Of a DNA stretch of 44,542 bases, positions 9,958-42,461 are shown one piece after another. A model generated the notes under the pieces. The model ran no database searches. It had not been told where the DNA came from and saw only the letters and a program-made list of their open reading frames with translations. The DNA is from Chara braunii (lineage: Eukaryota; Plantae; Charophyceae): positions 3,665,378 to 3,709,919 of the forward strand of contig BFEA01000019.1 of assembly GCA_003427395.1 (NCBI GenBank), read 5' to 3'. Within the stretch, counting starts at the first letter, position 1, and every line of letters starts with the position of its first letter. The translations under genes and the position numbers were made by a program.

Positions 9958-12900
9958 ATGCCGGAGGAGGAGGATGGGAGAGGTGGAGAAAGAAGACGAG
10001 GAAAGAGCCGGCGAAAAGCCTGCACATGTTTATGCGCTCCATTAGATGAACAATGTGCAAGTTCCCCCTGCTCATCTCCCTGCTCCCCCCCAGTCGAGAA
10101 AGAAAAGAACCGGAGATGGGAGAGGGAGAAGAAGACGACGAAGAAGAAGAAGAAGAAAAGAGGTGATCTTGTAGACGGCGAAAATGGCAAGGAGCTCCAG
10201 CGCAGGTCGGAAGGTGATGCCTTATGGCGATCGTCTTCGTCTGCTGGTGGAAGACGAGGAGGTGATAAAGTGGAAGAGGGACAAGCGGTCCAAAAGGAGG
10301 TGGAAAGGAACGATCACATCTCTCAACCTCCTCCTCCTCCTCCTCCTCCTCCTCCTCCTGTCTGTGCGCAGTGGCGGCAACAACAGATTTTGACAGACGA
10401 AAACAAGAATTATGACAGAGGAGAGGCTCATGGCGACATAGGCAGATATGGCTCATCCCCCGCAGCAGAAAGGATTGAGTTGAGGAAATTGAGCAGACAA
10501 AAGGGCATGAGGTTCAGTCCAGAAGTCTTAGCTTTATGTGGAGGAAGGCAGAGAAAGGGAGACGTCAACAGAGACTGTACTAGGAGGAGTAAACGTGGAA
10601 CTAGTACCCGACGACACCACCGTCATCATGACGAGTGCTTGCCATTCAGTGATATATCGTCCGTAGCTCCCGACAATGAAGACGAGGAGGTGATGAGCAG
10701 CACGTCTGGGGAGGATTACGGTTGTTGGAAGATACCTGCTTCTCCTCTCCCTGTCGCCCTTCCTCCTCCTTTTCCTCCTTCTCCTCCTCCTCCTACTCCC
10801 CCCCCCCTTCGTCCTCCTCCATGTGCTCCTTCTCCTCCTCCCCCTCCTGCTGCTGCTCCTCCTCCTCCTCCTCCTCCTCCATTGCCACTACGCAGAGTGC
10901 CTGTGACCACTGCTCCTGCTGCTGCTGCTGGAGGTGAACATGGATGTGAACCTCAATCTGGAAGAGCTTCAGTGAGCGTTAAGAAGCCAACAAAGCGCTG
11001 GAACCAATCCCCGGACAGGAGGTCAGTGGTAGGGGGAGTTAGTGAAGGTGTCTCTTCATTGTCCAGAAGTGGCAGCCAGTGGTCTTTGCCTGACGAAGGA
11101 GCCATCTTTGTTGATGACAATGATTGGGAGGAAGGACAAAATTTGCACGACAGTGATCGGGAGGACGAACAAAATTCGCACATCGTTTCACAGAAAGGAC
11201 AAAATGCATGGGAAAAGGTCTCAGCTTGGATGGATAGGGAGAAGAAGGATGGGAGTAAGGGAGAAGACACTGGGCAGGAGTTTGAATCGCTGCCACCCCA
11301 AACTCAGTGTGCCAAATCAAGCCTTGGTAATAAGATGGGAACGAACTCCAGAGACGATGAGCAGGGCAGCAGTGACAGTTGTAGTGGCTGGGAAGAAACA
11401 ATAAATCACCCCCCTTTGAGTGGAGGGGGATTGTCAAAGGCAGGATTTGACGCTTGGGAGAAGGTGTCGATTTGGATATCGAGGGACAAAGGAGATGGAG
11501 GAGATGGAGGAGATGGAGGAGGGGAGAGGAAGGAGGAGGGAGAGGAGGATGACAAGCGGCGTGAAAGTAAGCTGTCTGCAGTTCGGGATCGTGATCAAGA
11601 AGCCAGTAGGTTGGAACACTACTCCGGTAACCGGGACAAGGGACCGGTTGGAAGCGGCGTTGAGGCATCCAAAACGTCTTCTGACTGGACGTCTGACTCT
11701 TCTCATGAGGTTCAACAGATGCTACACAACGAAAAGGAGGGGAACGTTTCGAGGCGGAGTACACCCAAGTCGAGAAACGGTAGTTTCTTCAGGAATGGTA
11801 GTACGGGGGTGGTCGCGGAAAGCACAGGCTGGCTTGAGGGTGCCCTCCGCGAAAGTAAGAGTCGGAAGCTGGAGAAAGAGGGTCTGAGAGCACCTTGCCC
11901 CCACTGTGCACCTCCAGAGAGGGAAAAGATAGCTGGCAGTGGACTCAGTAAACAACAGGATGTTGCTGGTGAGGAGGAGTGGGAGGCGTGGCAACTGGGT
12001 CCAATATCGGCTTGGGCCCGCCCAGGCTTTTCCTCCTCGCCATCGCTGTCCCTTTCTGCGTCTGCTTCTTTTTCTTCTTCTCCCACCTCTTCGATGGTCT
12101 CCTCATCAGCAGTTCAGTCAAGGTGTGCCGCAAGCGCTGCTCAATCACCTTGTTCATCAGTGCGCAAGAATGACAAGAGTCCAAGACATATGCGTATTCC
12201 CTCCAAGGATCAAAGTCGAAGCTCCTCGTTGTGGTCTCCCTACCGGGCTACTGCTCCACAGAGGGATACCACTTATGATGTAATGACCAATGCTCTGTCA
12301 CACGCTGGTACTGATGGCTTGGCTGGTCCTAGGGAAGAGAGATTGCGGCTTGCCATTCCTGTTCCTGCTGGTGGAAACGCTTTGAGTCGAGATCTTAGTA
12401 GTTTGACGAAAGAGGATGTACTTCTTGCTCCACCTACCCTAGGGGAGAAACCTAATGCCAGGGACATGGACGATAGGTCCTGTGATCGTAGCACTCCTTT
12501 CCCAAGGGAGGAGGCAAGTTCAACTTATGACAATGATTGTTGTACCAATAACACACACAAGATGTTGAAAGGCTTAGAGGAGAAGAAAGAAGAAGAGGAG
12601 GAGGAGGAGCGAAGGAGGAAATGGGGAAGAGAAAGGATCACTCGATGGACCCTTAGAGCCGAAATGCTTCAATCTGCCCTAAAAGCCGAGAAGGTTCAGT
12701 CTGCCAAGTTCTCTCCTGAGCCTAGGGGTAAGGTTGTCCCATCATTCAAAGATGCCCATAGTGCCTATGGCGGAAGTGAAAGCTTGACTGGTCGGTTTTG
12801 GGACGACCGTGTTCAGACGACATGCAATTCTTCAATGGATGAGAGTGAAGTCCGGGTTTACCAGAAGGATCACAATCGTCTTGAAATGCGATTCCAGGCT

Positions 12901-15900
12901 TGGAAAGAACAAAGGGAGAAGGCATTATTAGTTCAGGATTCTAAGTTGGGACCCCCTCCACCTACTTCAAGCCTAGAGTTAGTGGGAGAAGATCTGGCAG
13001 CACAGGGCAGGGGCGATACGGGAGGGTACGTGATTAGCCATCATCACTCTGTTTCAAGTCGGAAGAACAACGATCCTGGCGAGGAATCATGTGAAGATTC
13101 ATCTGTCACAAATTGTGTGGGGGCCCTGCACACAGGAAGCCACCTGAGGGACCAGCTGGAGGCTAGTCGCACACAAACACTCTCTGAGGGCAATCATCAA
13201 TGCTCACAGCTGCAGAAGCCTTCTGTCTGGCAGCAGCCTATCTCCCAGGAGACTATCACCAAGCAAATCGATGGAGGCGCATCTCGCAAACCGTCAAAGG
13301 ACGCTGTGAGTTGTAAAAAAAGCAGTAGTGGTACCTCTTGTTTTAGGGGCAGTAGTTCTAGCACTGGTGATGACATCAACAGTAGTACTAATAACAGTGA
13401 ATCTGAGTCTGGGGTAATCAGCTGGAAGGCTGATTCAGCAAATTTATATGCTGGTTCAAGTTTAGGCAGGTGGAGAGAGGAGGTAGGAGGAGAGGAAAGA
13501 ACAACGACGATTCCATTCTCTCCATTATTTGCAGCAGCAGCGGAGGAGGAGGAGGACGGCGAAGAAGAGACGGTGGATGCGGAGGAGGAAAAAGAGTTGA
13601 AGGAGGAGGAGGAAGAAAAGGAGGAGGAAGAGGAGGAAGGAGAGGACCTAGAAGAGGAGAGTAAGGTAAAGGAGGCAGCTACCTGTTGTGTGTTCCCTCC
13701 TCTATCGGAAATGGAGGAAGGAGGCACCAGATACAGTAAACAAGTTCAACTGCAGATTGCCAAACAGCCAGACTGTGACAGCACGGGAAGTCTGATATAT
13801 CAGTCCCAGTTGACCGAGGATGATGATGACGGTAATCATGGTGGTGTTGACGAGGGTGGCTATGGTGATCATGATGGTGATCATGATATCAATGATGATG
13901 GAGATGATGATGCTGATGATGCTGATGCTGATGATGACGGTGGCTCAGTGATACTGAATATAGAGTCCCATTTTCCACCATGTGTTGTTTACGGGTCAAC
14001 CAGTGAAACAACCACAAGACAGAGTATTGAGAGGATGAATGACTGGGGGATAGAGAAGCCTGCTCCTGGAGTTTTAAACAGTTCGGAATCAATGAGAGTA
14101 GTTATCAATAGATGTCAGGAGGACTGGAAGTCTATCAACGGGAATGAGGTCGTAGAGGACTACTCACTGTTGAAGGGGTACGTTGAGCTTCAAGCTCGGG
14201 ATGCAGGAGACACATACTCAGAATGTTGTTACTCAGCTGCGGAGGAGGTTAAGGAGTGCTTACCCTTGTCACTGAGGGAGGAGCTGGAAATGAATGCCTC
14301 AGACTCTCAGGATTCTTCTGCGACAGTGGAGAGGTGGAGGCGTGATGCCACTGCACGCCCTGCTGTTACGGCTTTGGAGAAGAAATGTGCTGCTGTCGCC
14401 GAGGTAAAGCTTCCCGAAATGTGCGTAAGTCACAAGAGAAGAATAGAGGACGACTGTCGAAGTAATGTGCCAGAGGAGGAGTACAATCCTGACCAGCCAT
14501 GGCAGTTACCGTTCATTGTCCACTTAACCTCTGATACGCAGAGAGCTGAGAAGGGCGACGTTCGCTACTCTGGAAAGGAAGCCGCACTCAGTGTTGGTGA
14601 TGGGCATCATGTCGTGGACGAGGGAGAAGCCTTGAAAGAGAGGGTTGCCACTGCGGAGGGTTCTTTGAGGAAAACCATGGTGGAAGAGAGGAGGAAGAAG
14701 TCCTCTCCAAGAGAAACGATAGGAAAACTCGATCCCGCTGCACAAGCTCTGAACGGTACAGTTTGTGTGGCGTCATCATCGCAGAGAAATGCTCTGCCCA
14801 AGGATGTGCAGAAAGCTGGTCATCTAAGCACAGATTCGAACCTAACGATTCATCCATGGAGAGAGGTTCACTATGATATTGTACTGCCTCTGTCAGCAAT
14901 GCAGGGACCACCAGCAATGCGGGGACCACCTCCACCTCCTCGCCGTCAGGAGGAAGAGTGCATCATTGCAACAGCCCCTCCGCTGAGAACAGCTGCTCTG
15001 GACAGGCACTCACCGGTTATCATGAACACATCATCCGCAGTGGCTTTGCTTCAGAATCTGACGGACGAAGATATCTGTGACATCCCAACAGGAGAGTCGA
15101 GAGAGGGAAAGGGTAGTCATTCACGCTGTTTGGGACGGGAAAAAGATGCTCGAAGAGGGCTCATGTCTATTTCCCTACCCAGCTCCTCTTCCACCTTCAC
15201 CTGCACGTCCATCTCTGTCTCGACTTCCATATCCAGCTCCACATGCAGCTCCACTTCAAGCGCGTTTCAGGTGGTGACGATCGATGCAGATAAGCGAGCG
15301 ACAAAGAAGAAGAAGATCGGTGCAGATGAGTTTCAGGTGAAAGCCATGGATGCAGAGAAGCGGGTGACGACGAAGAAGAAGAAGAAGATCAGTGCAGCTA
15401 GTTTGAGTGATTATCTTTTTGAAGATGTTAACCTTAATTTGCAGCAATGTCCTTCACTGCATGCAGAGTCTATTGCTGCTGCCGTTTCAGAAGTCAATAG
15501 CAGCATACTCTTAGAGAATGAGTGTATCAGAGGTTATAATGATAGGCTTTTGGCTGGGACAAAATTGGGAATAGAGACTGCTATTCCTCCGGCAGTTGTG
15601 GGCCCTTGGGCAGAAGAGGCAGATGTCAGGCTCCACAGCTGTCAGATGGGAGACTTAGGATGCAGTGGTCACTTCTGCCAAGATAGGGACAACCATGAAA
15701 TCTCGAGCGAGCAATCAGTAAACCAGACGTCAGAAAAAGATGTAAGAGGGAAGACTACAACCCACCGGTTATCGCTGCATGTGGACTTTGAGCAGACAAG
15801 GCAGGAGAAGTCCGACGAAGACAGAACAATGGTTCCAGTCGTCTTAGAGGCAACGCGCCGCTTATCACCTCAGACCTTAACTGACGATAGTCATGTCCTA

Positions 15901-18900
15901 TGTCAATCCGCAGTGGACTGTCGAGAGACATCTACGTCGGATACGGAGCAGAAGTATCTCGGCCGCCATTCACATTTGCATGTGGAATCTATGGATGATA
16001 ATGAGACAGCTTTACACATCCCGACGGAGGCACCTGCAATCATCAGCAAAGTTTGTGCCAATGCTGCAGATGTTCGAGCTGGAAATGATACGCCTTTGCA
16101 GTCACTGTCTGTACTGTATGAACTGGTTGATATGTCAGCCAGAGAGAACTCGATCAAGAGACTATGTTTGTTAGAAGAAAAGAATGATGTAGGAACGGCA
16201 TGGGAAAGGGTCCAGATCCCTCTGGTCAATCACAACGGTGACGTTCTGGAGCTATCCTTGGGTGGGGAGAGAGAGGAGGTTTCTGAGTCCTGGCATGATG
16301 GGCAAGAAGGTCCCTCCATGTTTCCAGATTCAGAAGAATGCGACATGGTCATCAATGAGGACAGTGAGAAGGAGAAAGAGTCTATGCATGGCCAGGGTAC
16401 GATCCCATGTTCCCTGGCCATGGCAGATGCTCAAGAAGAGCAGGAGCTATCTGATCGAAAAGATGAGTACAACATGCTGGATATTTCAGAGGAAAAACAG
16501 GACAAGTTGCAGCAGCAGCAGCAACAGACGGAGGAGGAGAAGGAACAGCAAGATGGGAAGGAGGAGGCGGACAAGAACAACGAGGTGGAGGATCAGTGCG
16601 TTTCAATGAAGGAGAAGTTTGCAGGGCCATCAGGAACCAGTCTATGGCTTTCCTTGGACACTCGTGCTTCAGAGACCTTTACAGCAATTCCACGGAAGAG
16701 TGACAGTGTGGTTCTCTCTTCAGAGAATGATGATTTTGTGTGTCCAGAGCCAGTTTTTTCTGAGGGAAGGCAAGAGAGTCAGTGGGGGGAACTAAGCTGC
16801 CTCTCCATTCCACTTGTACATGACAACTACATGGAGACCTGGACAATTCTCCTAGATGGGCAACATGCAGGGGTTGATGCCAGAAGCGCAAGCCTGATGC
16901 CAGAACACAGTGTGCTTCCTCTGGAATTGGGCGAAAGCAGAGCAGTGCAACTGGAGGCGGAGGGGGAGGTGGTGGAGAGAGTGATCGTCTCATCTGAACA
17001 GGGAGCTCCTTCCATGACAGGGACTCAACTGGTGCGGGAGAATGCTCCCGCGGTTTTAGTGGATTACGATGGCCTGCTACGTTCAAATTGCTCAGGTCGT
17101 CCTTTTGCCGATGCAGTGGGAACGTTCTCACCGCTATTATTTCCAAGTTCAGAAAGGAGAATGAACTTTGAGGAGAATGGTACTCCTCCAATTGACCATG
17201 CCAACACCACTCCCTTTATTATGGGCTTAAGCGACTCTTATGAATCTTGGAGGGAGCCGTCTCCTGAACCTGCCAAGCCGTTATCTCGACAGAGTCTCGC
17301 AAGCGAAGGGCAACAGAAGAAGGGTTCCGATACGCTAGAGGAGAACAAGGCTGAGGTTGATCTGTGGGACGAAGCGGATGGACATGTGGTATCTCAGCTG
17401 GCTCTTGTCGAGAGCGGGGAACAGTTGGTTGATCTGAGAGGCCAGTTTGCCAGGGATAGTGGGGAGAGGACGGAAACGTCAGGTCTGATCATGACCTTGG
17501 CTGCTCCATTGCATGTCCCGGATTCTGAACGTGATGGTATGAACTCAGAGACTCCTGATGACAGAGCGTGTGTGGCCAGGGTGGAAGAGGATGATGATGA
17601 TAAAGGCTATGATGGGCCACTACTTTCAGGAGGGAAGGGAGGGAAGGGGAGCATCCGGTCTGTGCCAACGGCTACCAAGAAAGAGGACCGTGGCACTGTC
17701 CATGCGGAGCATGAACAGAAGTGCTTAGTGCCTGGACCAGAACCACCACGTTGCGAGGAATCAATGGAAATAGAGAGATGGAACGTTCCCGCTAACGAGG
17801 ATGGCACCATGACGGAGGAGATGGTCCAAGAGTTTGCCTGTCTCAGGGGTGGAGGTGAGACAGATGTGTACATTCCAGTTGCTTGTGTTGATGCAACAGC
17901 CTTGTTAGGAGATGATAAGGGACCTGGGTTTAGCGGTGGCGAAGAGGATGCTCGGTCTCATGTGTTACCTGCAGAGGATGAGAGTTGTGTGACCACTGGT
18001 GCCCCTCCAAACTGTGATGATGGTTCTAACTTCAGCTTGCTACAGGTCACAGCGACTACGAGGAGTGATGCACATGTTCCGACTATATCTGGGGAGGTGC
18101 AAGGTGACGCTACCGGTGCCCCTGATGTTCAGGTTCAGGTTCATGTTCACAGTCATGAATCAGTTGGTGCCGTTGACAAGGCCTCTAAGGCCATGACAAG
18201 CTCGTGCGATTCCATTAGGCTTATGGCGATGAATAGCGGTTTCGTGGTTCATGAGGACATCTCAGTGCTGCCAAAATCAGCTGTAGTCGATCCCCAGAAG
18301 GGGACCATGGAGCTAGTGCCTATGGAGACTGGAGAGAACAGAAGCTCCTTTGAAGGAGAGGAGCAACACCTATCGAGTGTGCTACTACAAAAGAGAAAAG
18401 CTGCAACGGAGGTGGACCTGCAGCCTGTTTTTGAAGAGAATGTAGTGCTACGCTCAGTGGGCGAAGGTAGTATGCAAACTTCATTTTTCACTTCCTCTGT
18501 GACAGATCAAGGCAGGCGCACTCTCATAGCAGATTGTGTAAGCGGGGACAACGGGCCCTCTGGTGACCAGGCAATGCACAGGGGCATTGGCAGCAGGGAG
18601 AGGGCGACGGTGTGGGAGACATCAGTTCTTATGCCTGAAGGAAAGGTGGAAAAGGATGTTGTAGATGTGATGGTGACTCAAGCAAGCTCGTTCGGAGACA
18701 ACGCTGCAGTTTCAAGTGAGAAAGGTAACCTCTTACTAGGAGGAGAGAGGAGTGTGGCAACCCAGAGTCTTATACTTAGGAGGCAGGAGGATACCATATC
18801 CGAGACAGGCGTTCGTTCACTCCCAGTAGAGAGTAGTTTATCAGTCCCTCGCATGCAGAAGGCGGGAGACGTTGGTGGACAATCCTTACCAAATGGTGGT

Positions 18901-21900
18901 GGACAGTCCTTGTCAAATGGGGAACCTCAAGGGGTGTCAATGAAACACTGTGAAGAAGGGCTTTCTCCAGCGGATGACAAAGAGGTATCGGTTGTTTCGT
19001 TGCGAAGTCGCATGGTCGAGCTAAAGGCCAGCTTCTCGGATCGGATGGAGGACTCGGTTCTTCTGCCAGATGGAAGGCAGGGTTCCCTCGCTGACACCGG
19101 AGGCCCAACTCCTTCGCCGCGTTTTGCTGATGCTGTCGACTGCATAAGCAGTCGAGAGGAGGGCTCTAACGTGTCTGCTTCAATGCATGTTACTGCAAGT
19201 CCTTTGCCTTACAAGCATGGCAATCTGGAAAGGCGAAGAGAGGCCGGCAAGGACCGTTCGGTCCGAGGAGAGATCTCGGGACAATCACATCCCATTTCAA
19301 AAGAAGATCTGAATGGCTATAGTGTTATGTTGTTGGGCACCGATGCGATGGATGTACCAGATGATCGACGTCTTCCTCCAGAAGAGGAGAAGCCTGCATC
19401 AAATGTTATGGAGGTGGTGGAGAAGGAACAGACTAGTACTCCGGTGAAGACCCCAGTTCTTCCCTCTGAGCACACTACTTCTTTGGAAGTCGGTGCCATT
19501 CTTTTGTCTGCAGATCAGTCGGCGGCGACCGCACATGCTAATGCATCTGGCTCTCATAACGATGAAGAAGATACTGCCCATTTCAAATCCAGTCTACTGC
19601 AGCCTAGTTATAGCAGCCTTGAGCATTTTGTGCTTTCGGCGGCTGACATTTTGAAGGGCAGCGGACTTACAAGTGATCAGACAAAACTTACAAAAGCCTC
19701 GCCTCATGTTACTGCGTTCGAGATGGATGATGGGACAAATGCTGGTGCTGCGCAGTCCAAATGCTTTGTTGTGCTCTCCTCATCGACAATTTCAAGCGCC
19801 AAAGGCTGTGGGATCGGCAGCGACGCGAAGGACGTTCTCAATCCTGTTTCCTGCTCACCGAACTCCAAAAATACGTCATCGAATTTGGAGAACTCGGACG
19901 ATACTCCATTGCCTTCAGCAAAAAATGTCAAACTTGCTGCATTAAAAAACGTGGAAGATGGTGCATGGGATTCAGTGGATGCAGAAAATGACGTATCGGA
20001 TGCTCTGTATTCCATCATCCAACGCTCGCAGCGTTTGAACGACGAGTGCAATGTTGAGCGGTTTCTGCTGTCAGCGGTCCATGTGTCAGAGGGAGGAAAT
20101 CAGGCTGCAAGGGATCAAGGTTCAGACGGCCAGAATCATGACAGTAATGTGGTTTCTGTCTTCACTGCCAACGTGGAGGGCAGCTCTAGCAGCCTAGTCG
20201 CTTCAGGACATAAGGGGAAAGAGGATGCAGGATCATCGTCGATGTCACTGAACAAAGTGATGTTCGCAAGGCCTGCAGGGGAAAGTGAGGCCAGAGGAGG
20301 AGGTCGACGTTGGACGATGGAATGGGGAACAAAGGGTGCTCTGGCTTCTCGTGGGGGGATTTCACTGCCAGAGGACTGGGAATTCACTGAAGAATCTATT
20401 TTGCGGGCCCTTGAGATGGGACAGCAGCTAGTGCAGTCGTTGCAAAAGGCACTGGATGAGGAGCGGAATCTAGTCAAGTCGCTGCAGAAGTCACTTTCCG
20501 AAGAGCAAATGCTTGTGGAGCAATTAAGGGCAATGCTCGGGCGGGATTACAACGACCCCAATGCACAGCAGGACTTGGCTGGTTCTATGCGCACCATATC
20601 GGCAGCACCAGCAGAACCCAGTGATGATCAACCTTCTGAGATGACATCAGGGCCCGGCCACGACCTCTATGGCGGTCAAGAGGACATGGTCGAGCTTGCG
20701 GAGAATGTAAAAGAAAGTGTTCCCGAGAACCTTGAAATCGACCTCCACGATCAAGCGCTTGGTCCGGTAGAGGAAGCTGAAGCTGAGAACGAAGCAGCAG
20801 CAAAAAAACAAGTGTCAAAATTTCCACCTGAGAATGAGGATGGGGATGAACAGCTGCCAAGGAGTACGCTGAAGCATGCATTAGAAAACAAGTACGAGAC
20901 TTGGGAGACTTCTTCTTGTGGTCCCAGTGTTCCACCAAAGGGTCATCCGGAAACAGCGAACTCATCACAGAATGTGGACTTGGCAGAGACGGCAGATGGA
21001 GAAGTAGTTACCGGGGTTCATTCTGTGGAGCCAGGTCCCGAAACCAGCTCTCCGAAGGTCCAGGAAGAAAAAGAGCGCTGCGTAACCAAAGAACCTGAGC
21101 TAAGCGTTCAAGATGATCTCCTGAAGTGCGAAGCGTTTGCAGTAAAGGTGGCGGAGGATGACGAGCCGGAGCCATCAGATGGGACGGAGATAGATCCCCA
21201 AGCTGATACCTCGGTAGACATAAGTGCAGGTGACCCGATAGAGAGGGATCATGCAGCCTTGATTTCGTTGGGAAGATCTGGGCCGATACTTGACCCGATC
21301 GAGCCAGAAACAAACAAGTTGATGATGACTGCGCCAACCAAGGTACGAGGGCTTGCAGAGCACTGCCACTCCGAACAGGCACTCCCTGGAGAGGAAGAAG
21401 ATACCATATCTGTGCCATCTGGTAAACGAGGAGATACTCTGGAAGGTGCCATGGACGAGGAGGAGGATCAGCTGGAGCCTTGGCAAGGCAGAGAACCGTC
21501 CGAGGGAGAGAGTTTTGAAGAGTTACCTTTGAGAAAGGAAGAGGGTGAAGCCCTAGAAGTCGGCAAAGAAGGAAATGATCTGGAATTGTCACAGGCTGGG
21601 GGTGCAAGCGAAGAGTCAAGGGAGCTCTTGCGTGCAGAAAAAGAGCAATGGTCGCATCTACAGACCCCGGACCTCGTCGGAAAGGATGCGATGGACTCTC
21701 TGTCTTTGAAGGAGGTGACCCTGAGCGTTGAGTGGCCATCGATGGAGGAGGTCGAGGAGGTCGATCAGTTTGTTTTGCAAGACGACGAGGATCAGCGGTT
21801 GCCTACGGAGACATGTGACACTGTTGGGAACAACATGACTGACTCCCCATCATTGCAGGACTTGGAGGAGGCAATAATCTTGGAATTCCTGGACTGGCAG

Positions 21901-26953: not shown

Positions 26954-27091
26954 TTAACATTTTCTGACTTTTATTAATTTTTTAATATTTTTAATATTTT
27001 TATTGCATTTGCCGGGCCTTTTGTGATTTCTCCTGTGACTTCCATGTCATGCTCACATTTACCCCATGCGTCCGCTGTGGGATTATTGCAG

Positions 27092-27139
27092 GCAAGGAGA
27101 GCATACGAACGACAATTGTATCTGATTGAGAAGTTGCAG
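27092..27139 (+). CDS. 48-nt phase-0/phase-0 microexon encoding ARRAYERQLYLIEKLQ (linker between IQ1 and IQ2 plus start of IQ2)
   Basis: TTGCAG acceptor (AG at 27090-27091), CAG|GTGAGT donor at 27140, branch-like CTCAC at about 27052. Length is divisible by 3 and it completes two IQ motifs spaced 23 aa apart when joined to the flanking exons. Confidence 0.85.
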
Positions 27140-29385
27140 GTGAGTGGCCTGCTGCGAATTATAGATGGTAACCACTTCCACATGTTTTTTTTTTTTTTTT
27201 TTTTTTTTTTTCCCCTCCCACATGGTCATGAATGTTACATAAGGATTGGTTATTTCAACTTATTTGAAATTTGAAACAAAAAAAGAAGAAAGATGCACAG
27301 TTGGGCACCGTGTAGCCTGTTTTAGAAAGAGTGAAGACTCCGATCTTCTGAAGACCTGCAAATCGTTACGTGCAAGGACAAATCGTCTGGCTTTTTAGGA
27401 GGGCATGAACTCAGGGCAAACTCACACGCTAAGCCTGGTCACGTAGCCCCCCGCAGTCACGCGCAGCGCAGTGTGAATATGCCCTTTTTGGAAGTTTTCT
27501 CCTTTTTTTTCTATTTCTAAAGGGCGACAGCCTTCAGGCGTCATCTTCACACTGACCGGCCCCAGTTATATTCAGACTTATCTACTGACCTGAGTTGAGC
27601 AGGATTCGAACTGCGATGTGTATTTCAACAGTTTTTTTTTTTTTTTTTTTTTAAGTTTTTTTGGATGTTAACGATCATGGATCTTCCAACCATAGTGGGG
27701 AGAGGCATGGGTGTGTTCTTTTTATAAATTTATTTTCTTCTGATGTGTTCCACTGGACTTGTGTCTCCAGAATGGAAACTTAGGATTTATGTAACACTGG
27801 GGGGGGGGAAAAAAGGAACGGAGTTCAAAATTCGAGTAGAATGCATTTAAAATTTAAATAAATTAATTTTTAAATTTTTAAATTTTAAATCTTCCATCGG
27901 ATTACTCCGGCAAAATTGCTTGGAATTCAGTTGAGAGTCGAGACTCGAGAGTTTTGTCTTCAGATTCTAGACCAGGATTTACAAACCCTCGCTTGAAAAG
28001 AATTGTGGTAAGATGCGTGCGCTTCAGACAAGACTGGCTGGCACAAATGGATCACAGTTTAACGGCGTTAATGGGTCGACGACTCGGCGAGTAAATTGAT
28101 ACCGCCGTTAAACTGTGATCTAGATCACAGCTTAACTGGGTTGTGCTAATGGGTCACGTTAGTGGGTCACGTTAATGGGTCACGTTAATGGGTCACGTTA
28201 ATGGGCACAAATGGATCACAGTTAATGGGTTGCGTTAATGGGTTGTGCGAGCGCTTCAGACAAGACTGGCTGGCACAAATGGATCACAGTTTAACGGCGA
28301 CTCGGCGAGTAAATTGATACCGCAAGGTGAGGAAACCCTTAGGTGTAGGCGTAACGAAATTGTAGATAGATGTAAATCAATTCGACACGAAACCCTTAGG
28401 TGATCTAGCCATGAACGGGTTGAAGGGGCCGGGACACAAAAAAAAACACGCAGCGCAAGAACAGAGTTACTCTCTCATGCCGGTTCTCTATGTCTCCCTC
28501 TCCCTTAACTTCTACTCTCTCTTCCCCTACCTCTCTTTATAGTCTGGCGTGACGTTCCTCTACTTTCGTAGCACTTGACCTACTCCCTTCGACTACTACT
28601 ACTCCATAGCCACGGAGGTCATCGTCCTCACCCTCAAGATCCACCTCTTCAACACACAGCTTGCCTAACTCACCCTCAGGACGGAGCAGCAAACTGCCGG
28701 TTGGATGTGCCGGCCGGCCTTCTCATGACACCGAATGATGTCTTCATGACTCCCGGCCTCCCGTCCCTCGCTCACTGGGCACATCAGCCTGTACCGGTGC
28801 TCTAGACCTAATCCTCCCGGGGGACCGGTCCGGGACACAAAAACACGCAGCGCAAGAACAAAAGCTAGTTCACAGGCATAACACCCAGACACTCGGGAAA
28901 AATAGCGATCGAACTCAAACTTGAAATCTTCAGCGAACTGCAGAAATCTCATACTATGTGCATTGAAGGACTGCGTGGGCACAAGGAACCTCCCAAGTTG
29001 TTTTCTTCACTACAGTGAGCTTTTGTTGTGCGCTCGTTTTGACAGAAGCGAATTCAGGCGACACACCGACACCTCTTTTAGCATGCAAGTTGATGCCACG
29101 ACAAAACCCTTGTGGGGGATTGCGGTTACCGTAAACACCCTTTTAGCTAGTGTTTGAACTCTGAAGGAATCATTTTGCTTCCCCAAAGCAGCTAGTGCGT
29201 TGCAACTGTATCGATCCCAGATTTACCATGGAATTTTTTTTTTCATCCACTCTTGCCCAAGAGATCTTGTTGATTACCTTTTTTCCAGCGGCTTGACCTC
29301 TTTGATTCAATCTCATGGATGCGATCACTCATTTAATAATCGAATGTTGTTTCATCCATTGTTCACTCGTCTTCTCTTCATCCAG
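27140..29385 (+). other. Phase-0 spliceosomal intron (2,246 nt)
   Basis: GTGAGT...TCCAG ends; contains poly-T runs and tandem/direct repeats. Confidence 0.8.
28018..28323 (+). repeat. Intronic direct repeat enclosing a 13-bp minisatellite (GTTAATGGGTCAC)n
   Basis: GCGCTTCAGACAAGACTGGCTGGCACAAATGGATCACAGTTTAACGGCG occurs at about 28019 and 28251; the tandem units lie at about 28147-28243. Confidence 0.8.
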
Positions 29386-32300
29386 GCTGTGGTGAGAGGG
29401 TACTTTGTCAGGAAGTACTCACCAAGAGCGGTGTGGTTCATGGGCCAGATTGTTAGGGCAAGAGCCAGGGCATTAGAAGCAGAGAGAGCGATGTCAATCA
29501 TTGCGTCGGGAGGGGAGGAGCCTGTTGTGGACATGGTGCACCAGTTTGAGTCTGTAGAGGTAAGGCAGAGGAGGCGCATCCGACAGGCTGCGTTGGCACG
29601 CGCACGAATGAGGTCCAAGAGCTGGAGAGAGGGTAGTGGGAGGTGGAGTGATCTCGGCAGCAGCAGTGGGAGTGGGCGTTTATGGAGTGGGGACGGTGGC
29701 GAAAGCAGCAGCGGCGAATTGGCAACGGCAACTAGCATAACGGTGGATCCAAGGAGGAGTTCGGGTAATGCGTGGGGAATTACAGACGAGTTCAGAGACA
29801 TTGGAACGGACACCGAAGAGAAGGGTTCGAAGGGTTCGAAGGGGGGGTTCAAATGGAAGGATAAGCGGCTGGAGCAACTGCAGGAGAGAATAGCGAAGGC
29901 AGAGGCAGGGCTTGCGAAAGCTCGGGCGCGGAAAGCGCGAGTGAATGCATCTGAACGACGGCCTTGGTCTGTCTTAGCTGCCATAAAGGAAGGGAAGTGG
30001 TCAGGGCGTAGTGCCGATCAGCACAGCAGGTCAGTGGTAAAGGTAAGTCCAGGAACGGAAAAGTCCACAGAGCTCCCTCCTGCCACGGTGAGTCCCGCAA
30101 AGAAGATGGGATGGTCTTCTGGGCCCAAAGTTTTGTCGTCGGGACCACAGTCTGTCCCTAGGAAGTCTCCAGAACCAAGCCTGACAGTGGCGGACGATGA
30201 GAAGAAGGAAAAAGGAAGCGGAAGCGGAAGGGGAAGGAAGAACCTCGGTGCAAAAATCGATGAACTATATGGGAAGACACTGGGGCGTAGCTGGGGGAAA
30301 CACAAGGGACAGCAGCAGGTTGTTGGATCAGATGTTGCTGACACAGAAGGCCAACCTGAGGACCAGAGGCGGCAAGAGCTCGAGCAGGCTGCCGAGAAGG
30401 AAGAAGAAAGTGTGCGGAAATTGGCAGACCTGCGCGAAGCGCAGAAGCTGGCTTCTCTTCGAAGAGACGAGGATCGTACTGCGGCAAGAGAGAGAAAGGC
30501 TGCACGATCGGCAGAGCGCCGCCGAGATGCAGAACAGGCTGCCGAGCGACGTCGTGAAATTCAGAACCTGTGGGAGCAGCGACGCAAAGCCGAAGAGACA
30601 TTGCGAAGGAGGGAAGAGGCTGAGCAACTCCGCGGCACCGAGGCCACAAGTTTGACAAGCTTGAAAGCCCGAAATAGCGGTAGGGCAGAGGCGGTCGAGA
30701 GTGGCGGTGCAGCATCTGAGCTGCAGAAACAACTTGAGAAGTTTTCGGCACGGCGAAGGAGAACGGAACTGGCTGAGGAGGAGCGCCGGAAAGCTGAAAA
30801 GTCTGGCGAGCTGAGGGCACTGGATATGAGGATAGAGATGCTGGAAAAGGAAGATGGGATGAAACGAGCAGCAGCGCAGGCAGCAGACCTCAAAAGGCAG
30901 TTCGAGATGGCTGAAGAGGCGAGAAGGGAGGCAGAGAGGGCCGAAGCAGAAAGAAGCGAAGCACAGATGTTGACTCAAGGGCAAAAAGATGTGGAAAAAG
31001 CTGCAAAGCTACACAGCGACTTGATTAGGAAAGAGCTTCTCCGCCGTGAAAGGGAGAAGGCCGCTGAACAGAGCAATGAACTTGAACGGACTTTGGCAGT
31101 CATACGAGATGGAGTGAAGGCACTTGGACGCCGACGTCAACCCAATTCAAAAATGCAAAACGTTAGTCCGCTTGATGACCTGCGGCCAAAACAAGATAAT
31201 GCAGAGAAGGTCGATACGAAGGAGGAGGGAAGCAGTGAAGAACCTGAAGATGAGGTCGGGAGGATTGCTCGCAGTGCGCAAACACGGTCGCTGACTCCAG
31301 CAGCAGGGCCATCCTCAGTACTTGCTGCAGTTTCCCATCCTGGAAAGGAGGATGAGGAAGGCTCATTCATGCTTCGCAACGGGGAGGAGAAGCGGGCAAA
31401 GCCAGGCAAGAATGTAGGGCGCCTGTTTCCGGAGTCTTTTGCCGGAGACGGGGGCGAGCAGGCTCATCAGAGCAGCGACAACCAGCTTCAGAGTGGGACC
31501 GAGCGAGTACAGAGTGAGATGGAAGAGATGGCAGTGAGTGAGCTTCGTAGTACACAGCAAAAGGTTTTGAACAGGGACGAGAGGGAAAAGGGTGATGAGG
31601 AGGAGGTACGCATCTCCGGTGATGGCAATGCCCCAGGCACAGTAGTAAGTGGGGAACCAGAGATGCACGTTTTAGAAGCGCAAGGGGAAAGGAGCATCAA
31701 AAGAAATGCTGACATAAGGAATCCAGAGAGTGTGCCCGTGACGAAACAGGTGCGATCCACGACAGTAGCAATGAGAATAGCTCAGCTGCAAAAACAAGCA
31801 ACAGTGCAGAAGAGCCGAACGGAAGAGGCATCATCCGTGCACGTGCCGGTAGGAGGACCCAAGAGGGAACCCACCATAGAGGAGAGGAAGGAGAAGAAAG
31901 GGGTAGTTGAGGCATTAAAGCCGGTTGCAAGCCTCAAAGGAGCATGGCAAGGGACAACACATCTTGTGGTGGCGCCTCAGAAGCCAGGGGAGTTGGGAGT
32001 TTCCATGGAGAAGAAGGCGGGTGAGGCACCGATGCCGGTCTCAGACCTCAAAGAAGCATCACAAGGGGAAGCGCATGCCGCAGAGGCAACCCAGAAGTTA
32101 GTGGAGAACGAGGATTTGAAAATGGTTAAGAAACTGCTGCAGAAGGTGAGCAAGGCAGTCCACATGGGTGGTAGTAAGGGTGGCGTGGCAAGCAAAATGT
32201 GGCAGCCTCCAGAGAAGACAGAGCATCGTCCCAGCAAGGTTCGCGTTGCCTCCGCGTTACTTGATATCGGAGCACAGAAGGCTGATCAGCTGCTTTTGGA

Positions 32301-35300
32301 GGCTGTGAAGGCAAGAAGTCTTCGTTGGGAGTCGGACGACACAGGCGCATTGCAGGTGAATTCGAAGAAAGCCGAGCAGCTCGGCAGGGAGCAATCTCTG
32401 CCATCCGTTACGAAAATCGACTCGCAGAAAGGAAGGGACTTCGATTCCAAGATTCGCAAGGACTTGAAGAAGGTGTTTGACATGAAAGGACAGGACCAAA
32501 TGTGGGTGAAAACAACACCATTGAGCAGCAGGGTAAAGATGCGAGAAGAGACGGGCATGGAGAATCAGCTATGGGATCATTCTTCAGGTAAGGCAACGGC
32601 AAACAAGGACGCGAAGTCGCCAAGGTTGCAGCAGGGTGAGAAGGAGGATCAAGCTTGGTTGGAGGTTGAGAGACATGAGCAGATGCGACGGGAGGCAGAG
32701 AAGAAAGCAGAGAAGCTGCGGGCGGAAATTGAAAAACGGATAGAAGAGCTGACGCTGGCGACAGAGAGAGAGCAGCAACTCTGGCTAGAAGTGGAGAGAG
32801 AGGAGCAGGTCCAGCTGGAATCGAAGCTAAGAGCGCAGCAGTTGCGCCTTGAGGCAGAAAGACGCCTGCAACAGGTGGCGCTTGACACGGAGATAGAGGA
32901 GAGGAGGCAGTTGGAGACCAAACAAAGGGCAGAGGAGCTACGGTTGGAGGCGGAGAGACGACTCGAGGAGATGACCCAAAACACTGAGAAAGAGGAGCAG
33001 ATGCAGCTGGAGGCAAAGAGAAGGGCAGAAGAACTGCGGATGGAGGCTGAGAAACGACTGGCGGAGCTGGCTGTGGAAGCAGAGCGAGAGCAGCAGAGGC
33101 AGTTGAAGGCTAAGAAAAGGGCACAGGAGCTACGGCTAGAGGCGGAGAGACGGCTGGAGCAAGTAGTTCTCGACGCGGAGAGAGAGGAGCAGGCCCAGTT
33201 GCATTTGAAGAGAAGAACAGAGGAGCTGCGTTTGCAGGCAGAAAGGAGGGCAGAGCAGCTGAAGCTTGATGCTGAAAGAGAGGGACAGCTGAGGTTGGAA
33301 GCGGAGAGGAGAGCAGAGGAGCTGGTGCAGGAGGCTGAGAGAGAAGAGCAAGCACGCGTAGAGGCTGAGAGGAGAGCAGAACAACTCCTACAGGAGGCAG
33401 AGAAGAGAGTTGAGCTTCTGTCAGAAGAGGTTAAGAAAGACGACAGGATGAAACTGGAGGCGGAGAGGAGAACAGAACAGTTCAGGACAGAGGCGCAGAG
33501 ACAGGAGCAACTGAGGAGAGAAGCTGAGAAGAGGGTAGAGCAGATGCGTCGGGAAGCTGAAGAGCAGGAGGTTGCGCGGTTGGAGGCGGAGAAGGCAGCA
33601 GAGGTGCTGCTGAAGGATGCAGAGAGGAGGGTCGAGATGTTGCAGCTTGCAGGTGCAAGAGACGAAAAGCTCCGTTTGGAGGCCGAGAAAAGACTGCAGC
33701 AGCTCAGATTGGAAGCATGCCAAAAGCAATACCTGCGCAGAGAAGCCGAGAGGAAAGTGGAGCATTTAGGAATCGCACTGGAAAGAGAAGAGCATGCATG
33801 GCTGCAGGTAGAGAGAGCCGGCAAGCAGTTGCTGTTCGAAGCAGAGAAGCGAGTGAATCAGCTGCACCTGGAGGCTGAAAGGGACAAGGAACTCCGGCTT
33901 GAGGCTGAGAGGAAAGCTGCACAGCTCAGGATGGAGGCAGACACAAGAGCGAAGGAGCTTCAGCGCACAGCGGAGAAAGAGGAGAAACTACGGAAAGAGG
34001 CAGAACAAAGAGTCGAGCAATTACGCGAGGAGGTTCAGCGTAGGTTTGAGATGCTGAGGCAGGAGGTAGAGAAACAGCAACAGCTTCAGGTCATTGCTGA
34101 ACAGAAAGCAGAGGAAATGCATCTGGAGGCTGAGAGAGCAAAGCAGTTACGGGAGGACGCAGAGAGCAGAGTCAAGGAGAGGCAGATGGCAGCACAACGA
34201 GAGAAGCAACAGCTGCTGGCAGCTGAGAGGGCCGAGCAGCAGCGACGGCAGGCTGAGATGGAGGAGGAGATGAAATTGGAAGCCAGCAGAAAGGAACAGA
34301 TGAGACTTGAGGCTCAGATGAGGACTGAGAAATTGCAGCTTGCTGCAGCAAGACGAGTAGAGCAGCTCCGTCTGGAAGCTGAAAGAGAGGAGCAGCTCTG
34401 GAAGCAGGCGGAGGAGCAAGCAGCTCAGCTTCAGCTTGAGGCAGAAAGGGGAAATCATCTTCGGCTAGAGGCCGAGAGGAGAGCAAACCAACTCAGAGAG
34501 ATGCGCCTCGAGGCCGAGAGGAAAGCTGAGGAGCTCAGGCTTGAGGCAGAGAGAGAGGATCAACTTTGTTTGGAAGCTGAGATGAGAGCTCAACAGTTCC
34601 GCACGGAGGCCGAGCAAAGAGCTAGGCAGCTGCGGCTCGACACGAAGAGGAAGCTTGAGCTCCAGCGCCTGGAGTCAGAGTTAGTGAACCAGATTAGGCT
34701 TGAGGCTGAGAAAGAGGACTCGATGAGGCTCGAGGTCCTTAGGATGACTGAACAGCTGCGCCTTGAGGCCGAAAGAGAAGAGGTCCTGCGCTTCAAGTTG
34801 GAGATGCAAGCTGAGAAGGCCCGAATGCAGTCCAAGCGGGAGGAGCGGGCTAGGCTGCAGGCCGATTTGAAGACAAAGCAGGTCCGCATGCAGGCAGAGA
34901 GAGAGAGGCGAGCGCAACTAGAGGCTGAGAAACTGGAAATGTTGCAGCAAGAGTCGGAGAGGGTTCAGCAGCTGCGGTTGGGCGTCAGCAGAAACAAGGA
35001 ACGGCGTACGCCGCCGCCTCTCAGGGAGAATAAAAAGTCAAAGTCCAGAAGAGAGGAGACACTTGAGTTGAGGGCAACGAGCGAGGAACGGCTCCATCGG
35101 CAGCGAGAGGCTGAGATACTGGATCAGTTTACGGCTAGGGTGGATGCAACAGAGGAGAACCAAAGTGTTAGGGTTGAGAGAGCTGAGCTGCTGCACCTAT
35201 TGCAGGAAAGTGCAAGAGGGAGATTATCAGGCACAAGGAAACCGGAACAGCTGGAGACGGAGTCCAAAGATGAGAAGCAGGCAAAGCTGGAGGGCAAGAG

Positions 35301-38133
35301 AGAGGGGCAGCTGGAGCTAGAGGAGGCTGAGATGGAGCATCTGCCATGGGAGACCGAGAGAGGCGAGGAGATTCTGCAAGATTCGACCAGGGAGTCACAG
35401 ATTTGGCTGGAGGTTTGGAAGGAGGAGGAGCTACTACTGAAGCCAATGAGAGAGGGCGAGCCAAGGCCAGATGCGACGAACGAGGAGAACATGCACCTAG
35501 AGGCAAAAAGTGCAGGTCACCTTTCCCCGGAGAGAGAAAAGGACGACCAGCTTTGCCTGAAGGGTGAGAAGAGGGAGCAAGCAAATATCATAATGGCGTG
35601 TGAGAGAGAATCGTGGAAGGGGGTGGAGGAAGTGAGAGAGGACCTGTTGTGTAGGTGGTTAGAGGAAGAGGAGGAGCTGCAGCTAGAGGAAGCGAGGGAA
35701 TGCATGCTGAGCCTAGAGGCACAAATGGAGGAGGGCCTTTGCCAGGAGGAAGGCAGAAACTACCTCTTGTTCGAGGAGGGAAAGGCAGCGGAGAGGTCGC
35801 AGAATCAGGCTGAGAGAGCACAAGTAAAGACCGGGATAAAGTGGATGACAGACGGCCTTCCGCACCACCAGGAACCGCACGCTGGGGATGATGTGCAGTC
35901 AGAGCAGTTGATGAGGTGTCAGGAGAAGCGGCATGGAGATGCTGATGGACGAACAAAAGCGCTAGGAGGAGAGACGCACAGCGAGCAGCGCGCGCCAAGC
36001 ACGGCAAGGAAGCAACAAGAGCAGCTGCCGACCCAAAGGGAGAGAGGTCAGGGGTGGCAGTCGCTAAGGAAACGGGACGGAGCTTTGCAGGCCTCGCAGG
36101 AGGATGGGGACGATAGGAGCAATGGTAAGAAGGGGAGAGAGAAAGGCAATGGGGGAAACAAAGAACAGCATTTGTTGTCAGATGGGCTGCGCCGGCTGGC
36201 AGAGGCAGAAGGAGAGCTGTGCCGTGAGGCGGGAATGGTAGAAGAAATGATAAGGTTGAAAAGGAACAGAGGGATGGAGGAGGAGGACGGAGCGTCACAC
36301 TCACACACCCTATACCCAGGGCAGCCTACGACAAGTACCGAGCAACCTCGCACAGATCCTCCTAAGGCCACGATGACGGCAAACGCAGGTCGCCAAAACA
36401 CCCTGGAGCTTACTAGACAGACGGAAGACTCGTCAGAACAGCGGGAGCGAGAACCAGGTCCTCAGAAGTCAAGTAAAGGGAAAGGAGATGTGTTGACGTC
36501 ACGACTATTTGGTGCAGCTAGGACACAGGGGAAGCCAGAAGGTGGTGTAGACATGCAATGGTCTTTCGAGGTTGGGGTATTGAGAGATGGGGGGGACACG
36601 GTTGAGGGTGTTCCCGGCACAGGAGTGCAACAGTTGCGAGCCACTGCAACATGCCGCGAGGCAGCTCGTCTGGGGGCTGGTGCCAATGAAGGTGAAGATC
36701 CTACCGTTCAAACACAGACATTGTCAGCAGCAGAGCGGCACCCCGAGGACGGCCGAGTTGAAGACGAAGCGCATGGCCTTCTCTGGAGGGAGATGCATGC
36801 AGCAGTCGACATCGCCACAGAGGCAAGACGTGTGGGGAAGGAGAGCTCCGACGAGGACGAGGGAACCTGTATACACGTGGAGAAGCCGGCAAGGAGACGT
36901 GAGCAACCTCATCTAAGAATTGAGAACGTGATGGAGGAAGCACAGCACCATACATGGCCTCTACTGCAGGGTTGCACCCCCCGACGGTCGGCGGCCCTTG
37001 ACTGGTCCGCTGCCGACCCGCCAACCGATCGGCTCGTTAATAAGAGAAAAGCAGACGACCTGTCACAAAGGCAAAGTGAAAAAGAACAGGGTCAGGATCA
37101 ATCAAGTGAAGCAAGAGGACCTACCTTGGATTCACAGAGGGTCGGCGCCGCCATCAGGAGGGAAAGCGACAAGCTCGGGAGAAACGGAGGCAGTGTTATC
37201 GACTTGGTGGGACAGACCGAGAGGAGGACGGAAGAGCTGCGCAGACAAAGGGAGAAAGAAGGAGAAGGTTGTCAGCAGCTGAGCAGACGGAAACGAGTCG
37301 AGTGGAAATCGGACTCAATCTGTAACTCGGATTTCAGGGGAAAAGCCCCAGAGAGACACCAAGAAGACGGTGTCGTTTCTGACATGGGTTGGATGTTCGA
37401 GTCCGGCATACTGAAAGATGACCACCAGACTGCAATTTCTGACAGACGAACAACAAGAACACCGCCACCGACAACAGCGACCGAGGAGCTCTCTCTTTTC
37501 GGGGACAGTACTGAGCAAGCCGGTCATCCTGTTGTTAGAGCGGAGAGTTCCTCCTGCCGGAGAGAGCATGATTCCAAGGCAGAAGCCCCAAAACGCGAAC
37601 ACGACAACGACATCTGCGAAGAAACAGAAGCAGCCATCGAACTTGAGACGGAACGCATCGCGGCGAACGCCAGCACAGCAGAGAAGGAACCATCGGCAAG
37701 CACCCGGCAAAACGCGGTTGATTTGTGTCCTGGGCAAGATGCCAACGTAGAGCAGGAGACGGAGAAAGATAAAGATGAAACAGAGACAGAGACAGAGAGG
37801 GACAATACAGTGGCAGCCGAAACGTTTTGGGGCGATGACGAATGGGCTAGTCGTTTGCTAGCAATGAAGCGGTTCAACTCCTGGCTGGATCACGAGCTCG
37901 GGAGTCAGTGGGAAGGATTCAATTTCTCGGATTTGGACCTCGTGGCCCTTCTCAACGAAATGTATAAGATTGTGGAGGACATGAAGCGCTCTCATTCCGA
38001 CTGGACGAACAATATGTTAGATGCGAGGAGAGATTGGATTACAAAGTGGGATTCCAACCAGGGTCTGGAAGAATTACTCAGAATGGTAGTAGCAGCTCAG
38101 AAGGCGGCAATTCCTCCTCCTGATCAAAGTTGA
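29386..38133 (+). CDS. Giant coding exon C (8.7 kb, 2,915 aa + stop): IQ2 completion, basic/helical segments, long charged helical rod, disordered region, Trp-rich C-terminal domain
   Basis: Pyrimidine tract CTTCTCTTCATCCAG|GCT at 29385/29386, in frame with ORF 29200..38133. Starts AVVRGYFVRK and stops at TGA 38131-38133. ORF residues before 29386 look intronic. Confidence 0.85.
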   Translation, partial: AVVRGYFVRKYSPRAVWFMGQIVRARARALEAERAMSIIASGGEEPVVDMVHQFESVEVRQRRRIRQAALARARMRSKSWREGSGRWSDLGSSSGSGRLWSGDGGESSSGELATATSITVDPRRSSGNAWGITDEFRDIGTDTEEKGSKGSKGGFKWKDKRLEQLQERIAKAEAGLAKARARKARVNASERRPWSVLAAIKEGKWSGRSADQHSRSVVKVSPGTEKSTELPPATVSPAKKMGWSSGPKVLSSGPQSVPRKSPEPSLTVADDEKKEKGSGSGRGRKNLGAKIDELYGKTLGRSWGKHKGQQQVVGSDVADTEGQPEDQRRQELEQAAEKEEESVRKLADLREAQKLASLRRDEDRTAARERKAARSAERRRDAEQAAERRREIQNLWEQRRKAEETLRRREEAEQLRGTEATSLTSLKARNSGRAEAVESGGAASELQKQLEKFSARRRRTELAEEERRKAEKSGELRALDMRIEMLEKEDGMKRAAAQAADLKRQFEMAEEARREAERAEAERSEAQMLTQGQKDVEKAAKLHSDLIRKELLRREREKAAEQSNELERTLAVIRDGVKALGRRRQPNSKMQNVSPLDDLRPKQDNAEKVDTKEEGSSEEPEDEVGRIARSAQTRSLTPAAGPSSVLAAVSHPGKEDEEGSFMLRNGEEKRAKPGKNVGRLFPESFAGDGGEQAHQSSDNQLQSGTERVQSEMEEMAVSELRSTQQKVLNRDEREKGDEEEVRISGDGNAPGTVVSGEPEMHVLEAQGERSIKRNADIRNPESVPVTKQVRSTTVAMRIAQLQKQATVQKSRTEEASSVHVPVGGPKREPTIEERKEKKGVVEALKPVASLKGAWQGTTHLVVAPQKPGELGVSMEKKAGEAPMPVSDLKEASQGEAHAAEATQKLVENEDLKMVKKLLQKVSKAVHMGGSKGGVASKMWQPPEKTEHRPSKVRVASALLDIGAQKADQLLLEAVKARSLRWESDDTGALQVNSKKAEQLGREQSLPSVTKIDSQKGRDFDSKIRKDLKKVFDMKGQDQMWVKTTPLSSRVKMREETGMENQLWDHSSGKATANKDAKSPRLQQGEKEDQAWLEVERHEQMRREAEKKAEKLRAEIEKRIEELTLATEREQQLWLEVEREEQVQLESKLRAQQLRLEAERRLQQVALDTEIEERRQLETKQRAEELRLEAERRLEEMTQNTEKEEQMQLEAKRRAEELRMEAEKRLAELAVEAEREQQRQLKAKKRAQELRLEAERRLEQVVLDAEREEQAQLHLKRRTEELRLQAERRAEQLKLDAEREGQLRLEAERRAEELVQEAEREEQARVEAERRAEQLLQEAEKRVELLSEEVKKDDRMKLEAERRTEQFRTEAQRQEQLRREAEKRVEQMRREAEEQEVARLEAEKAAEVLLKDAERRVEMLQLAGARDEKLRLEAEKRLQQLRLEACQKQYLRREAERKVEHLGIALEREEHAWLQVERAGKQLLFEAEKRVNQLHLEAERDKELRLEAERKAAQLRMEADTRAKELQRTAEKEEKLRKEAEQRVEQLREEVQRRFEMLRQEVEKQQQLQVIAEQKAEEMHLEAERAKQLREDAESRVKERQMAAQREKQQLLAAERAEQQRRQAEMEEEMKLEASRKEQMRLEAQMRTEKLQLAAARRVEQLRLEAEREEQLWKQAEEQAAQLQLEAERGNHLRLEAERRANQLREMRLEAERKAEELRLEAEREDQLCLEAEMRAQQFRTEAEQRARQLRLDTKRKLELQRLESELVNQIRLEAEKEDSMRLEVLRMTEQLRLEAEREEVLRFKLEMQAEKARMQSKREERARLQADLKTKQVRMQAERERRAQLEAEKLEMLQQESERVQQLRLGVSRNKERRTPPPLRENKKSKSRREETLELRATSEERLHRQREAEILDQFTARVDATEENQSVRVERAELLHLLQESARGRLSGTRKPEQLETESKDEKQAKLEGKREGQLELEEAEMEHLPWETERGEEILQDSTRESQIWLEVWKEEELLLKPMREGEPRPDATNEENMHLEAKSAGHLSPEREKDDQLCLKGEKREQANIIMACERESWKGVEEVREDLLCRWLEEEEELQLEEARECMLSLEAQMEEGLCQEEGRNYLLFEEGKAAERSQNQAERAQVKTGIKWMTDGLPHHQEPHAGDDVQSEQLMRCQEKRHGDADGRTKALGGETHSEQRAPSTARKQQEQLPTQRERGQGWQSLRKRDGALQASQEDGDDRSNGKKGREKGNGGNKEQHLLSDGLRRLAEAEGELCREAGMVEEMIRLKRNRGMEEEDGASHSHTLYPGQPTTSTEQPRTDPPKATMTANAGRQNTLELTRQTEDSSEQREREPGPQKSSKGKGDVLTSRLFGAARTQGKPEGGVDMQWSFEVGVLRDGGDTVEGVPGTGVQQLRATATCREAARLGAGANEGEDPTVQTQTLSAAERHPEDGRVEDEAHGLLWREMHAAVDIATEARRVGKESSDEDEGTCIHVEKPARRREQPHLRIENVMEEAQHHTWPLLQGCTPRRSAALDWSAADPPTDRLVNKRKADDLSQRQSEKEQGQDQSSEARGPTLDSQRVGAAIRRESDKLGRNGGSVIDLVGQTERRTEELRRQREKEGEGCQQLSRRKRVEWKSDSICNSDFRGKAPERHQEDGVVSDMGWMFESGILKDDHQTAISDRRTTRTPPPTTATEELSLFGDSTEQAGHPVVRAESSSCRREHDSKAEAPKREHDNDICEETEAAIELETERIAANASTAEKEPSASTRQNAVDLCPGQDANVEQETEKDKDETETETERDNTVAAETFWGDDEWASRLLAMKRFNSWLDHELGSQWEGFNFSDLDLVALLNEMYKIVEDMKRSHSDWTNNMLDARRDWITKWDSNQGLEELLRMVVAAQKAAIPPPDQS
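32640..34980 (+). repeat. Coding tandem repeat: L(R/Q)LEAERR(A/L)E(E/Q) units, 96-nt/32-aa super-repeat
   Basis: LRLEAERR-type starts at 32842, 32938, 33034, 33130 and 33226 (exact 96-nt spacing); degenerate 10/11-aa units continue to about 34980. Confidence 0.85.

Positions 38134-42418: not shown

Positions 42419-42461
<43 letters not shown>

Follow-up and report, generated by a model that had tools for sequence, protein, structure and literature searches.

A predicted giant IQ67-like protein from a putative three-exon gene of Chara braunii

Gene model and surrounding sequence

The analysed stretch of Chara braunii DNA (44,542 nucleotides, hereafter the window) harbors two long stop-free frames on the same (+) strand, at 9823-25788 and 29158-38133, as stated in the original prediction. 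In the gene model considered here, coding exon 1 (9958..25698, + strand; 15,741 nt, 5,247 codons) starts at the first ATG after an in-frame stop. It is followed by a microexon of 48 nt (27092..27139, +), which encodes the end of the first IQ motif (IQ1), a 12-aa spacer and the two opening residues of the second motif (IQ2), and by coding exon 3 (29386..38133, +; 8,748 nt, 2,915 codons plus the stop). The two predicted introns, both on the + strand and in phase 0, are intron 1 (25699..27091), situated at the hallmark position of IQD genes, and intron 2 (27140..29385), situated directly 3' of the Q of IQ2. Each exon has a length divisible by 3 and is free of N and of internal stops; GT/AG dinucleotides are present at four of the four junctions, with CAG at the acceptors. 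Lengths, frame and splice dinucleotides therefore agree with the proposal that canonical phase-0 sites and a 48-nt microexon join the two frames into a coding sequence of 24,537 nt; the predicted protein comprises 5,247+16+2,915 = 8,178 aa and has a mass of ~0.9 MDa. An additional candidate intron, with a GTGAGT donor and a YAG acceptor, may be located in the 5'-UTR (9509..9656, +).

Could frames of this size be open by chance? Chance ORFs are ruled out by the probability of such stop-free frames, calculated from base composition (log10 P of about -119 and -58), and the other reading frames across the giant exons contain 121-311 stops. The codon score trained on one giant exon and applied to the other was positive over both, the mean for exon 1 being +0.07 compared with -0.28 for non-coding DNA. 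Homopolymer runs occur at 0-0.06 per kb in the exons, at 2.7-2.9 per kb in the introns and at 1.6-2.9 per kb in the introns and flanks taken together. The sequence itself establishes both giant exons as real coding DNA. A TE-derived ORF was also considered and rejected: no transposase, RT, gag or integrase domain was found, and the repeats of the window are absent from the exons. More generally, the domain searches agree with the earlier statement that no enzyme, motor or TE domain is recognisable.

A key question is whether the two frames belong to one gene or to two. The locus could contain two separate genes, or be expressed mainly as short isoforms, with the second ORF starting from the ATG at 29344 (and carrying a single N-terminal IQ) and the first ending at 25788; each ORF has its own ATG and stop, and intron 2 carries TATA-like and AATAAA words. 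However, the ORF overhangs score as non-coding. The frames remain open past both splice sites, 25698 and 29386, yet the codon log-likelihood changes there, from +0.16 inside exon 1 to -0.33 beyond the donor, and from -0.37 before the acceptor to +0.10 within exon 3 (overall, the overhangs range from -0.31 to -0.37, as against +0.10 to +0.16 just within the exons). Furthermore, the interval between the giant exons contains 270 candidate segments of the stop-free, phase-0 AG..GT type. Of these, 27092-27139 alone has R/K at codon 2 and a hydrophobic-Q end; it alone also combines a strong donor with a YAG acceptor, and its donor is the strongest in this interval. Without splicing, IQ1 would be cut in half. 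Separate genes or short isoforms are thus quite unlikely. Given the shift in coding score at both splice sites and a microexon without equal among the candidates, a single spliced three-exon host gene is highly probable, with its splicing predicted, and the suggestion that the two ORFs form one gene is well supported by these sequence tests.

If the IQ module is spliced as modelled, the protein could still be shorter, with a later start or in-frame introns trimming the 15.7-kb exon. Three strong donor-like sites are present inside exon 1, and the internal duplications of this exon are weakly constrained (pN/pS up to 0.88). Against such trimming, the 5,247 codons are open and lack the homopolymers typical of real introns, and the codon score drops below -0.2 in only 3 of 103 windows of exon 1, two of which fall in the poly-Pro stretch. 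We regard a shortened product as very unlikely and retain the complete three-exon model below.

Several further features were observed within and around the gene. Translated in frame from its ATG, the pyrimidine tract that precedes the acceptor of exon 3 (29344-29385) has I-Q as its last residues; an unspliced transcript from the ATG at 29344 would also begin with one IQ motif, and the codon score there is intron-like. A TATA-like word at 9081 is followed ~95 nt later by an 11-codon upstream frame (~9175-9210) that resembles the first residues of the protein; this frame may be an upstream ORF or may stem from an old duplication of the start. A near full-length U6 snRNA copy (6793-6893, +; Rfam, 100.5 bits) with an A-rich tail and a ~16-nt flanking direct repeat looks like a retrotransposed pseudogene, and a second, partial U6 match is located at 5318-5390. 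The U6 copy is plant-type in sequence and, together with the repeat-filled introns, would suit a charophyte such as Chara. Four MITE-like hairpin copies of ~105-130 nt, 70-85% alike, occupy 7095-7203, 26231-26343 (within intron 1), 39225-39356 and 40204-40279, and a further palindrome of ~330 nt is found at 4056-4382. The assembly gap at 42486-43359 consists of 874 N, and the apparent ORFs at 42300-43700 are artefacts of this gap.

Occurrence of the locus in sequencing data was revealed by its region 29386-33000, the 5' part of exon 3, which is present in 20 runs from six studies, 15 of the 20 containing half or more of its words. None of these runs is on record as RNA; they are probably RNA, because their contig totals (18-201 million letters) suit transcriptomes better than the DNA of a large genome. 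All database searches were performed exon by exon, with queries limited to kin of comparable length and without a positive control. Neither the search for homologous proteins nor that of 50% representatives gave a match for the exon queries, the IQ region included; no relatives were found among metagenome contigs; the PDB search gave matches at chance level only, and NCBIfam gave none. The best ESM Atlas matches (0.88 and 0.75) are leads only, and one cluster at 0.75 carries an IQ motif. An exact look-up in the protein collection, the coverage of which for the host proteome had no positive control, found neither single ORF, and no fragments of the predicted protein were present in the collection searched. 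Gene finders had been expected probably to split or truncate this gene; the protein looks absent from the collections rather than split in annotation, which makes the locus a concrete case of a gene seemingly missed by annotation. In the literature consulted, no Chara IQD sequence is named and the protein is not described, although an earlier description may exist in the preprint on the origin of algal IQDs (Dahiya 2023).

The IQ module and its affinities

The IQ module is distributed over all three exons. Judging by motif position, codons 1-9 of IQ1 occupy 25672..25698 (+) in exon 1, and consensus comparison places the rest of IQ2, together with an IQ67-like 3' part containing a degenerate IQ3 slot, at 29386..29478 (+). 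IQ1 fits the relaxed IQ pattern and IQ2 fits the pattern with RG, while Pfam detects IQ half-motifs only (E 0.009 and 0.018, under the curated cut-off). The central tandem IQ module anticipated in the original prediction is thus present, in the form of two IQ motifs that are both completed by the microexon.

IQD genes are defined by three IQ motifs at 11- and 15-residue spacing, together with an intron in phase 0 that separates codon 9 from codon 10 of IQ1 (PMC1368998). Predicted intron 1 sits at exactly this place and in this phase, and the two discernible IQ motifs correspond to the number (at least two) used as a test of IQD membership. Comparison with the IQ67 consensus (PMC1368998, Table 5) gave 24 matches in 62 positions in a manual count by eye, without an E-value: 5/16 at the end of exon 1, 8/15 in the microexon with one inserted residue, and 11/31, ungapped, at the beginning of exon 3. 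The four residues directly after intron 1 are those of the consensus, and four matches fall past IQ2, in the IQ67-specific part. Farther downstream, manual comparison showed weak echoes of IQD motifs 11, 13 and 14 in the same order as in IQDs, the first of these being a basic helix (29551..29628, +) that weakly resembles motif 11 and lies at its expected place after IQ67.

At the same time, the strict features of the family are not all retained. The spacer between IQ1 and IQ2 is 12 aa long compared with 11 aa in IQDs. The third IQ of IQDs follows a 15-aa spacer and keeps its hydrophobic-Q pair in 31 of 33 Arabidopsis members; in the predicted protein, the IQ3 slot reads A-R and the Q is lost, with the flanking residues still in register. 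Intron 2, after the Q of IQ2, is an extra intron and creates the microexon. Neither a Pfam match to DUF4005 nor the C-terminal microtubule-binding motif of IQDs was detected. The pI of IQDs is typically near 10.3, with two acidic exceptions known, and exons 1 and 3 give 4.8 and 5.7, respectively. IQDs of Arabidopsis and rice range from 103 to 893 aa (the largest being 794 aa in Arabidopsis and 893 aa in rice), so the model of 8,178 aa is nine times the size of the largest rice IQD.

Does the module descend from IQ67 or from another tandem IQ array? Counting against the IQ67 reading, IQ motifs of different families are similar to one another. A single giant spliced gene could have taken its tandem IQ from a CAMTA- or myosin-type array, its product serving as a calmodulin-bound tether without IQD-like partners. 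The 12-aa spacer is the spacing of CAMTA and myosin arrays, a Trp of exon 3 aligns with the first Trp in the calmodulin-binding motif of CAMTAs, and an intron placed behind the Q of IQ2 falls outside the IQD definition. However, the CAMTA motif is matched at 2 of 11 positions strictly and at 4 with the published relaxations, no CG-1, TIG, ankyrin or motor domain is present, and intron 1 lies at the IQD position, the exon-intron layouts of these families being distinct (PMC1368998). We consider such an origin possible but doubtful. Membership of the CAMTA family itself was rejected on the basis of the motif and the absence of CG-1, TIG and ankyrin domains, and membership of myosin VIII/XI was rejected because domain searches found no motor domain. 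Through the predicted IQD intron hallmark and, by manual count, 24 of 62 consensus residues, the module resembles IQ67, and IQ67 ancestry appears likely. The earlier view that the protein cannot be assigned to a named family is therefore too weak.

Regions of the predicted protein

The proline-rich N-terminal stretch (10327..10887, +) and the basic region (29386..30285, +) were both found where they had been anticipated. The basic region, which corresponds to residues 1-300 of exon 3 directly after the module, has a pI of 10.5, is the only basic part and represents a candidate microtubule- or membrane-binding part. The acidic, largely disordered region (12958..24057, +; pI 4.5, net charge -352) also exists, but it extends over ~3,700 aa (residues 1001-4700) instead of the ~5,000 aa first proposed, as the first 1,000 aa are neutral. 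By a measure of the FoldIndex type, in which charged helices are counted too, 68% of the scoring windows in exon 1 and 92% of those in exon 3 appear unfolded.

The helical rod (32656..34995, +) consists of 780 proline-free residues arranged in 32-aa repeats (~3 x 10.6). Its hydrophobic periods are 10.6 and 3.54, its charge period is 5.3, and salt-bridge pairs are enriched relative to shuffles (121 vs 89 at i+3 and 112 vs 89 at i+4). A 200-aa piece was modelled as a single helix with a pLDDT of 94, and the proposed ~780-aa helical rod was borne out; as one straight helix, 780 residues would measure ~117 nm. Neighbouring 32-aa repeats have pN/pS values of 0.33 and 0.39 in blocks 1-2 and 0.67 in block 3, and the first two values indicate clear protein-level constraint on exon 3. 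The rod is, on the evidence of its sequence, a long helix under purifying, protein-level selection. In exon 1, five short internal duplications have pN/pS values of 0.45-0.88; since these exceed the 0.33-0.39 of the rod repeats, exon 1 is under weaker protein-level constraint than exon 3, as expected for a disordered region. A Trp-containing motif of ~12 aa occurs twice in exon 1 (~11206-11490, near residues 418 and 499), with a pN/pS of 0.45 between the copies, and is a candidate short docking motif.

Periodicity also bears on whether the protein could be a structural component of sperm or flagella, in which axonemal-type IQs would be combined with a trichohyalin-like filament. The rod autocorrelation peaks at 32, 21 and 53, and a 53-residue lag would equal ~8 nm, the repeat of the tubulin dimer. 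However, any 10.6 repeat yields this agreement, which is numerology, the rod has no Pfam match even with E values of up to 10 allowed, and the presence of 29386-33000 in runs of six studies suggests broad expression. A flagellar role is hardly probable.

The Trp-rich C-terminal 105 aa (37816..38130, +) are predicted to be helical. The claim of a folded domain at this end was not confirmed: the single-sequence model reached a pLDDT of 48, and no relatives were found among ESM Atlas leads, the PDB and metagenome contigs. The final 26 codons (38044-38121) recur ~200 nt downstream as a degenerate copy (74%) at 38252-38328.

Proposed role and comparison with known systems

What function could a protein of this composition have? 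We lean towards a giant, divergent IQ67-like scaffold that is regulated by calmodulin and encoded by one spliced gene. Calmodulin or a calmodulin-like protein would bind the two IQ motifs, which would form the regulatory site, and the basic region behind them may bind cortical microtubules or acidic membrane together with partners, in the manner of the central region of IQD2. The rod, for its part, could act as a stiff spacer or dimerising tether, and the acidic disordered region, with short docking motifs along it, could provide an entropic spacer. The protein would then have no catalytic role; controlled by calcium/calmodulin, it would position other proteins. IQD2 of Arabidopsis uses IQ67 to bind calmodulin and its central region to bind microtubules and KLCR1 (10.1101/2024.10.01.615909). 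In Chara braunii, two full-length CAMTAs are known, and calmodulin and CMLs bind the IQ regions of CAMTA1 (PMC11662445). The Ca2+/calmodulin-regulated scaffold of the original prediction remains the best reading. Of this model, the sequence shows the anatomy of the gene, and binding and location are proposed by analogy.

A bolder interpretation, which we consider unlikely, is that the gene represents a separate, undescribed branch of IQ67-related proteins, with the 12-residue spacing and CAMTA-like residues marking a step from tandem IQ arrays to IQD. Its product would be a calmodulin-controlled ruler of 0.9 MDa, with a 117-nm rod and thousands of acidic-spacer residues, at the cortex of giant algal cells. 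An algal IQ67-like module with non-canonical spacing would make the origin of IQ67 testable. If spliced as modelled, the protein would be among the largest of the plant lineage, with a coding exon of 15.7 kb. Midasin and BIG have ~5,000-5,400 aa.

In comparison with IQDs, the predicted protein shares the position and phase of predicted intron 1, two IQ motifs, 24/62 consensus residues by manual count, a basic region behind the module, short motifs within long disordered regions and the lack of a catalytic domain. Algal IQDs are described as mostly single-copy and as carrying short motifs in long disordered regions (PMC13443282). The predicted protein differs in its acidic character, its 8,178 aa and its 780-aa helical rod, as well as in the spacer of 12 instead of 11 residues, the lost Q of IQ3, the second intron and the missing DUF4005. 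Because of the spacer, IQ3, the intron, DUF4005 and the acidity, we call it IQ67-like rather than IQD; it is best treated as a divergent protein that fails strict IQD membership.

As in CAMTAs, an amphipathic helix whose Trp is in register comes after the tandem IQ, whereas the calmodulin-binding motif agrees at 2/11 positions and the CG-1, TIG and ankyrin domains are absent. Plant myosins VIII/XI similarly combine tandem IQ motifs with a long helical rod far downstream, but the Chara protein has no motor domain, only two IQ motifs and no DIL tail. Charged single-alpha-helix and trichohyalin-like rods, finally, resemble the rod described here in being E/R/K/Q-rich and proline-free and in their enrichment in i+3/i+4 pairs; the Chara rod differs from them in the missing Pfam match and in its 3.54-residue hydrophobic stripe, which favours a coiled coil over a pure single helix.
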